Shown here piece after piece: positions 30,507 through 36,418 of a DNA stretch of 64,000 bases. Location: sequence record NC_048668.1. The stretch is one strand, 5' to 3'. Position 1 is the first letter of the stretch. Each line of letters begins with the position of its first letter. The notes under the pieces were generated by a model, which searched no databases, was not told where the DNA came from, and saw nothing but the letters and a program-made list of their open reading frames with translations. Position numbers and translations under genes: made by a program.

Positions 30507-30535
30507 ATTAATTACTCTTAGGAGTGTCTCTGACA

Positions 30536-33500
30536 ATGAGTAACATTACTTATCCCGAACTCTATCAACGATTCGGTATACGTTCTACTTCGGGGTTAAC
30601 TACCCCGAAACTGTTTAATCTGGAGAACTTCAAACTCCCTCGTGGAGCGATCGTTCACTACCTGCCTCAGTCGGTTTCCGATTTAGGCCCGGACGATCAG
30701 TTCTTCCCGATTATCAATGAACGTCTTCGTCCCTACGTAGACCAGGTTACCGATATGACCTCCCATGAAGGAGCTCCTCGACGTCGTGGTGCCTTTAACG
30801 TAGAGAACCTGAAGCGCCAGTGGCTGATTCGTAATCGTCGCTACAGACGCGTTACAGACATCGCCAGAGCGTTAGACGATCGTCAAACTGCAATCGTTGT
30901 TAACTACGCTTTGATCCCGATGCAATGGAAATACCAACCGGTCCCAATGGCCCGCTGGTTCCGTTTCCAAAACCTGATGAAGACGTTCGCTGACCGTGTC
31001 AAATATTTCGGTGAACAGTCTAGCCGTCCCCAGTTCCTCTTCCTTACTCTGCCGGATGTATTACCGTCACGTCAATACCTGAACGTATCGGTTGAGGCCT
31101 ACGATGTAATTCAGGATGCCCGTCAGGCTCAGCAAAGTAATCTGCAGAGCCAACAAGGCGATACTATCGCACGGTACTACGATAACCTCTATCCGGGTAT
31201 CATGACTGGCCAGGGTACTGCGTTCTCTAACGAGGCGTTTGATGCCAGTGCGTTAGGTTGGGGCGATGAACCTGCGTTCGAATCCTTCGATGAATCTTCA
31301 CTCTCAATGGGTGATGATGATCCGATCGTAGCCGTTGAGTCGATGAACCGTATTCGCCTGGGTTACTTCCAAGATGACGCGTCTCTGTTCCTTTCTGATC
31401 TTTGGAAGTGGATGTCAGAGAACCGCGATGAATCCATCCTGGGTTCCATCCCAAGTAATGCATTGAAGAACCTTAACCTGGTTGTCATGCGTAACGGTAA
31501 GTTCAGTCTGCTCTCCTTTGATAAACTCGACCAATGGGTTAAGTCTGAAGAGAACGAACGTGGTATCGGTTTCGGTTCAATGTCTCAGACGATGGATCGC
31601 TACTTGCAGAACATCGTAACGACGACTTCGGTATCCGACAAAATCACCGTTGAAGAAGAAGTTGCAGAAACCGGTGAAACGGAAGTCAGCGACATCAAAG
31701 TCCCTGAACCACAACCAGGCGACCCGGATGTAGATGTCAGCGTTGGTGACAAAGGCGAAAGTGACATCGCACGTCTTCGTCGTAGTGCTCAGCGTGTAAC
31801 TAAAACTCCTCGTGAGATTTTGGCAACTAAGCGCAGTGAAACGCCAATTCAAAATACCGACGTCACGGCGACCACAAGTTTCCAACCCGAGGAAACGACT
31901 GTTGTAGTAGACAAGCCTACTCCGGGTAAATCGGAAGAGGAAGTCATCGATACCAACAACCCGTTGATCAAACCGGTTGAAAAACGTTCCCGTGATCTCC
32001 TGAGTAAAGGACTTATCTCGGGTAACGAGTTTAAACGTCACGTACGCCTCGCTAACAGCTTCAAGAGTATCAAAGCACCATTCGGTGAAGGTACACTGGA
32101 AGACTTCATGAAGATCCCTCACGAGCAACTGTGGGACTTTAAAGCGAAAGAGATTCCGGACATCCCTCACGTGGTCGATAAGACCATGTTGAAGTCTACC
32201 TTACTGAACTACGACCAAGATTACATCAGTAATGTCTTCCAGAAAGATGTTGCAAACATGGTCGTCAGTTTACAGAAGGCAGGTCTGGCAATTACGGATT
32301 ATCGCGTCGAGAAGAAATCCGATGCGTTGAACGACCTCTACGACTACACGATTAAAGTCGTGCCGGTCTATGGTAGTCCTTCTACTATCCGCTTCCAATT
32401 ACCGGCAGTGGATAAGAATGGTAAGTATCGCGTGAATGGCACTAAGTACTTCATGCGTAAACTTAAGTTCGATAAACCAATCCGTAAGATCTCTCCGAGC
32501 ATCGTGGCGTTGTCTACGTACTACGGTAAACTCTTCGTTGAGCGCTCTTCGCGCGCAAGTGAAGATTTGGGCCATGTCCTCGTTGACCTGATCGAAAGGT
32601 CTAGTCAGCTCGACGTCCCTACCGTTACCGATTTGGTACTGGGCAATACATTCACGGAAGATCAGGACGTACCGCGCGAATATTCCGCATTGGCAAAAGA
32701 GTTCGTCTCCTTTGTACTGAATGGAATCCTGTTTACATTCGACTACCCTAACCTGGCGAATAACTACACGGAAGACGTCGTAGTGGCAGCTAAGGCGAAG
32801 GGCTGGGTTCCAGTTGGTCGCAAAGGTAAAGAGTTCATCTTCATGAATAATGAAGGTAAGCTCGTCGACGCTAAAGGTAATGTGTTAGGTTCTATCAACG
32901 AGATGTTGGGATTACCTGATGAGAAACTTCCGGTTGAGCAAGTGATCGTTAAGATCATGGGCGAAGAGATTCCGATGGCTGCGATCCTCATGTATCACAT
33001 GGGCATCACTAAGTTGATGAACACTCTCCCAGTAAAACCAGAGCGTCGTGTTAAAGGCACTCGCGTCGAGCCTGTCCCAGGTACGTTCGAGTTAGTCTTT
33101 GCTGATGAAGTTTGGCGCTTCCCTGTCCACGGTGGTAATAGTAGTCTGATTTGGGCTTCCCTCCAACGTTGGAAGAAATACCTCCGTAGCTTCTCTGTAC
33201 AAGAGCTGGACAATCCGGACACCTTTAACCTGCTGTTCGGTATGGCTAACCTGAGTGCGCGTTACGTGCGTGAGATCGACAACATCAATGCGTTGTTCTT
33301 AGATCCTATCGCTATTGACGTACTGCGCGATATGAAAGAACCGACCGAGTTGAACGACCTGTTCATCAAGGCAGCTTTCTATCTGGTGACCGATAACTAT
33401 CCGAGTGATATTTCCTCAGACGGTTCTCTGTTCCGTGGTTACGAACGTATGCCTGGCGAAGTCTACCGTACTTTGTCCAACGCGTATCGTTCTTACGCCA

Positions 33501-33895
33501 GTCAGCCTGTTAGTTCCCGTGCAACTATCGATATCCCGCCGTTTGAAGTATTGGCGGCAATCCAACGTGACCCATCCGTCGCCATCGTTGAGGATTCTAA
33601 CCCAATCCACAACCTTAAAGAGAAAGAGAACGTAACTTACTCTGGTACAGGCGGTCGGTCTAAACGTGCAATGGTTCGTCGTACTCGTGCGTTCCATAAA
33701 TCAGATATCGGTATTCGTGCAGAGGCATCGGTGGATAACGGTGACGTAGGGATTAACACATTCCTTACTGCTAACCCTAACCTGACCTCGCTTCGTGGTA
33801 CAGCAGTTCCAACTGTTGATCCGGATCCGAAGAACGGTGTCGGTAACCTTCTGAGTACGTCAGCGCTCGTAGCTCCATTTGCGACTTACGATGAT
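30536..33895 (+). CDS. Virion RNA polymerase beta-like subunit (phiKZ gp178-like), exon 1
   Basis: GGRS...R, EASVDNGDVG and PFATYDD motifs. Ends at the in-frame TAA that begins the intron. Track start is GTG at 30524. Confidence 0.9.
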
Positions 33896-33919
33896 TAATG
33901 TAATTGAACTGTAATGAAT

Positions 33920-33960
33920 TTAACACTCCTTAATATGAGAAGTACTTAAGGAGCGGTTAA
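33920..33960 (+). promoter_or_regulatory. RBS-sequestering hairpin with a TATG late-promoter core in its loop
   Basis: CTCCTTAA 33926-33933 pairs with TTAAGGAG 33946-33953, which contains the SD. TATG lies at 33934-33937. Confidence 0.75.
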
Positions 33961-33961
33961 G

Positions 33962-34948
33962 ATGCCGATAGAATCAATTCAGTTTCCTGGATTTTACGAG
34001 ATACCCGGATTCGACCGGTACGTGATTTCCAAAGAGGGTAGAGTAGTCAATAAATTAACTGGTACCGAACTGAACGGTAGCGTGAACGAAGCCGGATACC
34101 TCCATTTTCGACTTACACGCGCTGCTCAGGACGCGTTAACGATAGGTAGACATCGATTGATGGGTATTGTCTTTAAAGACCCAGGGATCCCTGTAGACGA
34201 TTTGGTGATTAATCACCTTAACGGCATAAAGGGAGATGACTTCCTAGATAACCTGGAATGGGAAACCTACCAAGGCAACGCTGAACATGCCGGTGAAATG
34301 GGGTTGACTAGTAAATGTTTACCAATCTCTGTGCGAGACTATGAAACGGGAGAAGTTAGAAATTACCCGAGCTTTATAGCCTACGCCAGAGAGTCTGGGA
34401 TGACTAAGGATGCAGTTAGTCGTAGAGTGGCAATTGGGGAGAGACGTTTGTTCCCTGAATTGAAACAATACCGACTAGCATCTGTAACAACCCCTTGGTA
34501 CGCTATCCGAAATAAGGAAGCTGCTCTTAATGAGAACGGTACGGAAAAGAGCGTTGACGTGAGAGAGCTGATCAGCGGAAAGGTAACAACCTTCCCAAAA
34601 GCATCATTGGTCGCAATCCACTTTAAAGTTTCGCCCGCCACTGTTACTCTCTGGTTGAAACAAGAAAACCAACCAGTCTTACCAGGTATGATTCAGATAA
34701 AATTCTCTGATGATGAAACTCCCTGGAGAGAAGTAATTGATCCGTGGAAATCCTTAGAGGAATACACGAAGAATCGCGTCATAGTCGTCACCAATGTCGG
34801 AACCGGCGAAAAGGTATTTTATCCATCCGGCAAAGATTGCGCAACCAAACGAAACATTAAACCAACCACGCTACACATGCGGTTGAAATCCCCTAAAGGG
34901 AAAGTGTTCTCCGATGGCTGTCGATACGACTATTATTCAGAAATTTAA
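33962..34948 (+). CDS. Intron-encoded NUMOD4-HNH homing endonuclease with C-terminal NUMOD1-like repeats
   Basis: IPGFDRYVISKEGRV, GYL, HRL, INHLNGIKGDDFLDNLEW, then three repeats of the type V.D..TGE...(Y/F)PS. Confidence 0.92.
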   Translation: MPIESIQFPGFYEIPGFDRYVISKEGRVVNKLTGTELNGSVNEAGYLHFRLTRAAQDALTIGRHRLMGIVFKDPGIPVDDLVINHLNGIKGDDFLDNLEWETYQGNAEHAGEMGLTSKCLPISVRDYETGEVRNYPSFIAYARESGMTKDAVSRRVAIGERRLFPELKQYRLASVTTPWYAIRNKEAALNENGTEKSVDVRELISGKVTTFPKASLVAIHFKVSPATVTLWLKQENQPVLPGMIQIKFSDDETPWREVIDPWKSLEEYTKNRVIVVTNVGTGEKVFYPSGKDCATKRNIKPTTLHMRLKSPKGKVFSDGCRYDYYSEI

Positions 34949-35266
34949 TTACCAGGTCACTTCTGAGAGTAATCTCAGTCGATAACTCCTTTAATTGCTG
35001 GAACCCCCTTAGAGCTTAATCAACTACAACGTAGATCGAAAGATCAAGCGTGAATGTTTGAAAATGATTAAGATTGGGCAATCAGCAGCGAAGCTCCTGT
35101 AAAATGGAGAACGTTCAACGACTATCGCCGTCGGGCGAGTAGGGTTCAAGTGAACTCGAAACGGGGAGCCCCTTTAATTAGGGTGAAGATATAGTCTCGA
35201 CATCTGAGGAAAGCTCAGAGCTGCAAAGGCAGGCTTAGGAGTAACGAACCTAAGTGAAGATTTTCG

Positions 35267-36418
35267 CCAAAACGAGTAAGTTTCATCTCTATTCAGCAAT
35301 CCCACGTTATCGCTTCTAGTGACGCAATGGTTTCTCCTATCCGTACTGGGTACGAGCAAGTCATGGCTCACCGTGTTGACGATACATTCGCTACCGCGGC
35401 TAAAGGCCCAGGGGTGGTGACAGAGAAAGGCCCTAACTACATGGTCGTAAAATACGACGATGAGAAATTAGGTGAGGAGCGTATCCAATTAGGTCGTCGC
35501 TTCGGTGTGGTAACTGGTCACGTTGTTCCACACGCCGTAGTATCTGAACTGGAAGTGGGTAAGCGAGTAGTAGAAGGTGAGATCGTAAGTTACCATCCTG
35601 GGTTCTTCCAGCGCGACTGGCGTGACCCGACTCAGGTGCTGTGGAAGTCAGGTACTCTGGCCAACATCGCACTGATGGAAAACAACTCGACCTTTGAGGA
35701 TGCGAGTTTGATCTCCGAATCACTCTCTAAACGTCTGCACACGCCGACTAGCCATACGCGTACTATCTTGGTTAACTTTAACCAGGGTATTCGTAATCTG
35801 GTAGCGGTTGGCGAACATGTAGATAATGAAACGGTTCTCGGCTACATTGAGGATGAGGTTTCTTCTGCGAGTGATTTGTTCGACGAGTCCACTTTGGAAG
35901 CATTGAAACGTTTGGGTTCTCCAGCTCCGCGTGCTAAGTATGTAGGAGATATCGAGAAAATCGAGGTAATCTATTTCGGTGAGAAGGAAGACATGTCTCC
36001 TTCATTACGGAAAATTGCGGATTACTACGATAACCAACGCGCCAAGCTTTCTAAGGCTTTGGGTGGTACAGAAGCGAAGACTGGGCAGATTTTCACGCCT
36101 ACGCGATTGGACGGTCTCTCTATTGAGATTGATATGATGGCGATTCGTATCTACATTACCCATGACCGCTCTATGGGTGACGGGGACAAGATCGTGGTGG
36201 GTAACCAGAAAAAGTCCGTGGTGTCTGGAGTGTTCACTGGTAAGTGCCGTACTGTCGGCCCAGTGATTCCTGGCGATAAACCATGGGACGTAGATCTCCA
36301 GTTCTCGTACAAGTCTGTAAACGCACGTATCGTAAACTCCGCGATGATGTCGGGGATGGTTAACATCCTTCTCCAGCACATTGCCACTGCGATGCTGAAC
36401 GCTTACAACGAAGAGTAG
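35267..36418 (+). CDS. Virion RNA polymerase beta-like subunit, exon 2
   Basis: In frame with track ORF 35327-36418 (60 nt upstream). PKRVSFISIQQSH, TFEDAS and GDGDKIVVGNQKKSV beta motifs. Confidence 0.9.
   Translation, partial: PKRVSFISIQQSHVIASSDAMVSPIRTGYEQVMAHRVDDTFATAAKGPGVVTEKGPNYMVVKYDDEKLGEERIQLGRRFGVVTGHVVPHAVVSELEVGKRVVEGEIVSYHPGFFQRDWRDPTQVLWKSGTLANIALMENNSTFEDASLISESLSKRLHTPTSHTRTILVNFNQGIRNLVAVGEHVDNETVLGYIEDEVSSASDLFDESTLEALKRLGSPAPRAKYVGDIEKIEVIYFGEKEDMSPSLRKIADYYDNQRAKLSKALGGTEAKTGQIFTPTRLDGLSIEIDMMAIRIYITHDRSMGDGDKIVVGNQKKSVVSGVFTGKCRTVGPVIPGDKPWDVDLQFSYKSVNARIVNSAMMSGMVNILLQHIATAMLNAYNEE

Follow-up and report, generated by a model that had tools for sequence, protein, structure and literature searches.

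A homing-endonuclease gene that probably forms the P1 loop of a group I intron in the virion RNA polymerase gene of a Serratia jumbo phage

The DNA analyzed here is a stretch of 64,000 nucleotides (nt) of record NC_048668.1, referred to below as the window, and it is identical to Serratia phage vB_SmaM_2050HW (2050HW), a 276-kb phiKZ-like jumbo phage (100% identical record MF285618). Within it, an open reading frame (ORF) at 30524-33898 meets a TAA stop directly after the residues ...ATYDD and is followed by a 328-amino acid (aa) ORF and then by a match to a group I intron core. The locus raises the question of how a 5' splice site could find its internal guide sequence across an endonuclease gene, and in which part of the intron that gene lies. 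An earlier note on this DNA, made from the sequence alone, had proposed that the gene is looped out of P1 by a long-range stem. The analysis supports this in its main part: the element is very probably a mobile group I intron in the virion RNA polymerase beta gene, with an HNH homing-endonuclease gene as the terminal loop (L1) of an extended P1.

The borders of the intron were obtained from an intronless allele. Serratia phage Moabite carries the same gene uninterrupted, with GACGAT joined directly to CCGAAGCGT (GACGAT, then CCGAAG), and overlaying it on the window therefore fixes the intron at 33896-35266, with splice sites between 33895 and 33896 and between 35266 and 35267. These borders cannot slide because the bases flanking each junction differ. 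The last exon base, U33895, and the last intron base, G35266, satisfy the U(-1) and omega-G rules, and removal of the intron gives a continuous frame in which ...ATYDD runs into PKRVSFISIQQ, matching Moabite and two relatives in IMG/VR. The insertion follows two conserved Asp residues of the beta subunit, which is also the site of the PhiPA3 gp210 intron. The ligated RNA is predicted to join ...GAUGAU to CCAAAACGA (GAUGAU, then CCAAAA) and to encode a full-length beta-like protein of about 1507 aa. The three parts of the interrupted gene are as follows.

30524-33895, + strand: exon 1 of the gene for the beta-like virion RNA polymerase subunit, whose last residues are the conserved ...ATYDD (ORF list; RNA polymerase beta subunit annotation in MF285618; joined to exon 2 in intronless Moabite).
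33896-35266, + strand: group I intron of 1371 nt, beginning directly behind U33895 and closing with omega-G35266 (Rfam RF00028; borders by the intronless allele).
35267-36418, + strand: exon 2, beginning PKRVSFISIQQ (first 20 codons protein-identical to Moabite, with nine synonymous base differences).

The assignment to group I is based on a cmscan match to RF00028 at 34937-35220 (82.6 bits against a 50-bit cut-off, E 1.7e-19, model positions 1-253), in which the covariance-model score over P2-P9 clears the curated cut-off. The elements of the intron, in order, are listed below.

33892-33896, + strand: 5' strand of P1, made of the exon end UGAU and the first intron U; pairs with 34955-34959, and position -4 co-varies with the guide among relatives.
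33900-33917, + strand: 5' arm of the long-range P1 extension, with core GUAAUUGAA at 33900-33908 and possible continuations CUG (33909-33911) and AAUGA (33913-33917) (duplex fold; minimum-free-energy fold of the mini-intron; anchored-helix p about 0.014).
33926-33953, + strand: hairpin burying the endonuclease Shine-Dalgarno sequence AAGGAG, with UAUG in its loop (RNA fold -14.3 kcal/mol, z -3.46).
33962-34948, + strand: homing endonuclease ORF, 328 aa, HNH/NUMOD4 type, candidate catalytic His85 (Pfam; gp210 alignment).
34933-34952, + strand: 3' arm of the long-range P1 extension, with core UUUAAUUAC at 34944-34952 overlapping the ORF stop and a possible continuation at 34933-34940 (duplex and mini-intron folds).
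34955-34959, + strand: internal guide sequence G-GUCA, whose G34956 wobbles with U33895 (3 nt 5' of P2; exon covariation in five contexts).
34963-34978, + strand: P2 hairpin CUGAGA-GUAA-UCUCAG (cmscan alignment; G-C to A-U covariation against Kodama and Yaphecito).
34984-35220, + strand: ribozyme core P3-P9; the P7 strands read GACUA and UAGUC, and an insertion separates P7 from P3' (cmscan against RF00028).
35221-35266, + strand: 3' peripheral extension after P9, with hairpin CUUAGG...CCUAAG, ending at omega-G35266 (sequence reading; intronless allele).

A direct sequence check places all strings on which the earlier note had built its proposal where it had put them: TGAT at 33892-33895, the two 9-mers, GTCA at 34956-34959 and CTGAGA-GTAA-TCTCAG at 34963-34978. 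The in-frame TAA that ends the exon-1 frame occupies 33896-33898, at the very start of the intron. Directly downstream, GTAATTGAA (33900-33908) pairs with TTTAATTAC (34944-34952) in a 9-bp helix of eight Watson-Crick pairs and one G.U, and the endonuclease stop TAA (34946-34948) falls within the 3' arm of this stem. Duplex folding adds CUG/CAG and AAUGA/UUAUU, for a pairing of about 22 bp in all (-12.6 kcal/mol). TGAT and GTCA form 4 bp that include U33895.G34956, and U33896.G34955 adds a fifth pair. All of the ORF (33962-34948) falls in the interval from the 5' splice site to the guide at 34955-34959, and an ORF in that interval is by definition inside P1. The P2 hairpin named in the earlier note is likewise present in the Rfam alignment and is supported by its G-C to A-U covariation. 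Separately, cmscan assigns the P1 of its model to 34941-34962, with four non-canonical pairs; this local P1 is an artefact, the true 5' strand being located 1 kb upstream.

The placement of the ORF depends on the identity of the guide. GUCA at 34956-34959 is supported by its position, 3 nt before P2 in a block common to ORF-less relatives, and by covariation with the exon end. The exon/guide combinations differ across five contexts: UGAU/GUCA in 2050HW; CGAU/GUCG in Yaphecito, BUCT660, Kodama and Totoro; GGAU/GUCC in the phiKZ gp180 intron; GAAAU/GUUUC in the KTN4 gp55 intron; and CUCU/GGAG in two marine ORF-less introns with the same P2. The guide pairing with its U-G wobble, as first proposed, thus holds by both position and covariation. 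Were P1 to use another guide, either the local GUUA at 33956-33959 or the GUCG at 34978-34981, the ORF would lie in J1/2 or L2. Each of these gives 4 bp with the exon end, and the GUCG after P2 is conserved. GUUA, however, is the sole guide candidate in the leader, reaches its 4 bp with two wobbles and has three of its four bases tied up in a small hairpin over the ORF start according to local folding, in keeping with the earlier observation that no convincing local P1 exists. The GUCG after P2 stays constant where the exon reads UGAU in 2050HW and CUCU in the marine introns (L018 and L019), while the guide before P2 changes; since it is invariant despite the exon change, it is not the guide. 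In addition, the 3' strand of P1 precedes P2 both in group I architecture and in the Rfam model. Both candidates were rejected, GUUA for its wobbles and local pairing and GUCG for not tracking the exon change, and a guide other than GUCA is very improbable.

With the guide placed at 34956-34959, the closing stem can be examined across relatives that differ in the presence of the ORF. In Serratia phages Yaphecito and BUCT660, the intron at this site has no ORF. The minimum-free-energy fold of its first 50 nt runs from P1 (CGAUC/GGUCG, 5 bp) through an internal loop to a 10-bp hairpin capped by a tetraloop, with P2 3 nt further on, and its guide-P2 block GGUCGCUUCUGGGAGUAA is homologous to GGUCACUUCUGAGAGUAA in 2050HW. 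Kodama and Totoro retain the same two hairpin arms and have a 413-aa HNH endonuclease gene (29% identity to the 2050HW enzyme) exactly in the tetraloop; in Totoro relative to Kodama, the stem shows one compensatory change, C-G to U-A, and a change of U.G to U-A. All four share with 2050HW the insertion site, the guide/P2 block GGUCRCUUCUGRGAGUAA... and the layout of P1, internal loop and stem. They differ in having no ORF or the 413-aa endonuclease, in their mosaic ribozyme 3' halves and in the sequence of the stem, UACUUUAGUU/RACUGAAGUA against GUAAUUGAA/UUUAAUUAC.

Introns of other jumbo phages are arranged alike. PhiPA3 gp210, phiKZ gp179 and KTN4_075 are each located between the 5' splice site and the guide, and the stems that close their loops have energies of -20 to -36 kcal/mol. 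For KTN4, the intronless phiKZ gp55 allele confirms the borders that P1 had predicted. A loop-closing helix is kept in six lineages, and a compact hairpin takes its place in Yaphecito, BUCT660 and the two marine introns. When the ORF is deleted in silico, in the manner of the mini-intron that the earlier note had suggested, six of six introns give the same fold of P1, internal loop, stem, 3 nt and P2. The proposed long-range stem therefore stands at the level of the family, through the local 10-bp hairpin of Yaphecito, the insertion in Kodama and Totoro and the compensatory change; for the 2050HW helix itself the argument is one of register and homology only. The metagenome scan contributed the two marine relatives and one false match, and the IMG/VR protein scan contributed only two intronless alleles. 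The introns of Escherichia phage nepoznato and Aeromonas phage PS1 have ORFs adjoining the core and were left out because their 5' splice sites could not be fixed.

Several further features of the relatives were recorded. The introns are mosaic, with the 5' half of the Kodama intron being that of Yaphecito and its P7.1-P9 region that of 2050HW, and this pattern suggests recombination between introns at one site. KTN4 (1552-2795 of its locus) and OMKO1 have an L1-ORF intron in their gp55 homologue that phiKZ itself lacks, and no other intron of the set has a long-range P1 stem as stable as that of the KTN4 gp55 intron (11 + 7 bp, -36 kcal/mol). In phiKZ, the annotated gp180 ends at the first codon of the intron, and the sequence after the gp179 intron core (about 2820-2990 of the locus) holds in-frame codons for ~60 aa that would extend gp180 if the intron splices.

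For 2050HW itself, a number of results weigh against the proposed architecture. A 4-bp guide is not unique, with 20 intron G positions able to form at least 4 bp with the exon end, and the exon/guide pairing amounts to only 4-5 bp with a P10 of 1 bp. The duplex energy of the long-range stem is indistinguishable from that of shuffled sequences (z -0.62), and the stem is the weakest of the family (-10 to -12.6 kcal/mol). In the ensemble of the full-length precursor it has a probability of 8.6% and is missing from the minimum-free-energy structure. That structure instead uses a 14-bp alternative helix between 34199-34212 and 34945-34958 (GAUUUGGUGAUUAA/UUAAUUACCAGGUC), which reaches -16.7 kcal/mol against -8.8 kcal/mol for the cognate partner in the same frame. 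The stem also occurs without sequence variants, Haymo and ParM-25 being identical to 2050HW over the whole intron, and so offers no column-level covariation; a pattern scan of IMG/VR found no further variants of the 2050HW-type intron. The covariation check called for in the earlier note thus came out in part: guide and exon co-vary, as do the stems of the relatives, and variants of the 2050HW helix do not exist.

The alternative helix would sequester both the guide and the 3' arm, and its upstream strand mimics the splice site (GAU followed by U). This strand lies within the ORF, in codons of the HNH motif VDDLVINH. Shuffling of the ORF gives p about 0.017 for the helix, and it has no conserved counterpart in PhiPA3 or Kodama. 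The helix may have arisen by chance, and by the folding model it would compete with P1. Thermodynamic folds of 1.4 kb ignore tertiary docking and the order of transcription, and the full-length result is taken as a caveat and not as a refutation.

The non-significant energy tests of the stem alone were replaced by a test anchored on position. A 9-bp helix between any two 30-nt AT-rich flanks arises with a frequency of 6% among shuffles and 4.4% among real windows. When a helix of the same length must start at most 7 nt from the splice site and end at most 4 nt from the guide, the share falls to 1.4% of shuffles (p about 0.014). Of the six relatives put through the same test, five give p 0.0005-0.003, with helices of 11-12 bp in PhiPA3 gp210, phiKZ gp179 and KTN4_075; the stem of the phiKZ gp180 intron is interrupted and is not significant by this contiguous-helix test.

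These numbers bear on a reading that keeps the ORF in L1 and GUCA as the guide, as above, but takes the 9-bp stem of 2050HW to be a coincidence or without function. Something else, such as compaction of the ORF RNA, tertiary docking or a protein, would then have to join splice site and guide, and the AT-rich complementarity would be due to chance or be a remnant of coding and insertion history. Besides the shuffle comparison and the low ensemble probability, this reading can point to six sites inside the ORF whose pairing with the 3' arm and guide equals or exceeds that of the cognate partner, and to the coding constraint on the 3' arm, which comprises the last codons and the stop. It has to account for a stem in the same register, with different sequences, in every relative tested, for the compact hairpin retained in the ORF-less alleles, for the compensatory change in Totoro and for the anchored result in 2050HW taken by itself. 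Given the chance-level results, the 2050HW stem becomes convincing only through its relatives; with these included, we infer that it forms in vivo, and a fortuitous stem is considered improbable.

Whether the intron splices at all is a separate matter, and here too there are results on the opposing side. No exon-exon junction was found in four public RNA runs mapped to 33600-35600, which yielded only diverse related intron cores from wastewater samples, and a long-read transcriptome study detected no splicing of predicted phiKZ introns, including that of gp179, under its conditions (PMC10914365). The intron could accordingly be one that no longer splices, with the subunit made as two polypeptides and the element reduced to an endonuclease cassette with a decayed ribozyme. 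Other phiKZ-like polymerase subunits are also split, and the database records for this locus give two 'RNA polymerase beta subunit' coding sequences (CDSs) with the endonuclease between them, the second starting only at ATG 35327.

Against a decayed ribozyme, the core scores far above the Rfam cut-off, the P7 strands, U(-1) and omega-G are intact, and the guide has tracked a synonymous C to U change in the exon. The start of exon 2 is the most informative point. The 20 codons from 35267 to the first ATG at 35327 encode exactly the Moabite protein, the nine base differences all being synonymous, and conserved residues of the catalytic region would be lost without splicing. Because only synonymous differences are seen upstream of this ATG, the stretch must be translated, which requires splicing; as read from the sequences, this is the best indirect sign here of a functional intron. 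Loss of splicing thus has very little probability, and the intron is expected to splice.

Taken together, the elements suggest the following course of events. After transcription, the first 15-25 or so nt of the intron (33900-33917) would pair with the last codons of the endonuclease and the bases following them (34933-34952). This long-range pairing would lay UGAU and the adjoining intron U on G-GUCA (34955-34959) and so form P1 with U33895.G34956 across about 1.04 kb. P1 would then dock into the P3-P9 core that follows P2, and splicing would restore ...ATYDD-PKRV.... The endonuclease start would be held in the Shine-Dalgarno hairpin, limiting its translation. A ribosome terminating at UAA 33896-33898 would sit on the 5' arm. 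With the endonuclease stop codon placed within the 3' arm and the guide G 8 nt downstream, a ribosome terminating there on unspliced RNA would occlude the guide and block P1. An interplay between translation and splicing is plausible on these grounds, and the location in L1 might couple translation of the ORF to formation of the splice site, as the earlier note had supposed.

A broader proposal can be made in two forms. In phiKZ-like jumbo phages, an endonuclease gene in L1 may be the rule, perhaps since transcription and splicing may occur in a phage nucleus away from ribosomes; or, in 2050HW, the overlap of the stop with the 3' arm and the 14-bp decoy at 34199-34212 may act as a translation-splicing switch. 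Either is regarded as unlikely at present. If 2050HW builds such a compartment, splicing would be kept apart from ribosomes, and the usual conflict between ribosome and ribozyme would be removed. The PhiPA3 gp210 and phiKZ gp179 ORFs run through the guide and P2. A search of the 2050HW genome for chimallin (phiKZ gp54) gave no match with a single-sequence query, and this family is expected to be highly divergent in sequence.

Among known systems, the phage T4 introns in td, nrdB and nrdD (sunY) are group I introns in essential genes. They have an in-frame stop at the start of the intron, hold the ribosome-binding site of the endonuclease in a hairpin and loop the ORF out of the core. Their ORFs are found in the P6a or P9.1 loops, and their enzymes are of GIY-YIG or another HNH type. 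The T4 introns are reviewed in PMC3984707. The 2050HW intron resembles them in its early in-frame stop, hairpin-held ribosome-binding site and looped-out ORF, and differs in that the T4 ORFs lie outside P1 and encode a different enzyme type.

Endonuclease genes in P1 have been documented elsewhere. In nuclear ribosomal DNA (rDNA) introns they occur in P1, P2, P6, P8 or P9 (PMC9223047), and in the Hypomyces aurantius mitochondrial intron cox3-i2 the gene is in the P1 loop (PMC4964425). The unusualness that the earlier note had implied for a P1 location is therefore overstated. These introns are like that of 2050HW in that the coding sequence is looped from P1 and the splice site and guide pair at a distance. 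They belong to the IC1/IE or mitochondrial IA1 types, lie in rRNA or mitochondrial genes and encode His-Cys box or LAGLIDADG enzymes, whereas in 2050HW a phage intron carries an HNH enzyme within a protein-coding gene whose pre-mRNA can be met by translation. The literature search found no phage intron explicitly described with its ORF in P1, which does not prove that none has been described.

The closest known relative is in PhiPA3, and the 2050HW intron is the orthologue of its gp210 element. The two agree in host gene, insertion point and the order of 5' splice site, ORF, guide, P2 and core, with cores about 73% identical. They differ in phage genus and host, and while the 2050HW ORF ends within the 3' arm, that of gp210 reads on past the guide and into P2. 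In PhiPA3, P1 is continuous with the long-range stem, at -25 against -12.6 kcal/mol in 2050HW. In the gp210 paper (Birkholz et al. 2024, Science; PMC11620839) the intron is described as putative, and an RNA structure for it was found neither there nor in the other papers searched. The gp210 element has a known role in phage competition.

The general principle of an endonuclease gene in P1 is thus already known, and the advance is incremental. What is new is an RNA-level description of the jumbo-phage intron family together with a natural series of ORF-less and ORF-containing forms. A concrete and comparatively supported RNA architecture is provided for the intron family of PhiPA3 gp210. One site offers intronless, ORF-less and endonuclease-bearing alleles, a series in which the effect of a 1-kb P1 loop on 5' splice-site choice can be followed. 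There are also consequences for annotation: covariance-model scans misplace P1 locally, and jumbo-phage records that list two beta CDSs lose 20 conserved exon-2 codons.

The endonuclease itself belongs with the I-HmuI / gp210-type HNH homing endonucleases, with both the motif His and a NUMOD-type DNA-binding module present. Pfam reports NUMOD4 at 26.2 bits (cut-off 23.4) and HNH_3 at 20.4 bits (E 4e-4), the latter below its cut-off of 24.8. The protein is 43% identical to PhiPA3 gp210 over its full length, with His85 aligned to gp210 His82, a residue whose mutation abolishes activity in gp210 (PMC11620839). The intron is 100% identical in 2050HW, Haymo and the Pectobacterium phage ParM-25, while 380 bp of flanking exon differ at 5-6 positions. 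An identical intron in divergent exons suggests recent horizontal spread by homing.

Two minor observations concern the insertion site and the wider genome. Between Moabite and the window, synonymous differences crowd the insertion site, with three in the last four codons of exon 1 (33884-33895) and seven in the first five codons of exon 2 (within 35267-35326); such clustering could reflect variation of the target or resistance of intronless alleles to the endonuclease. A second group I intron is present in the same genome at 237265-237574, outside the window (58 bits, apparently ORF-less). Its host looks like a non-virion polymerase gp55-like gene, and its site differs from that of the KTN4 intron.

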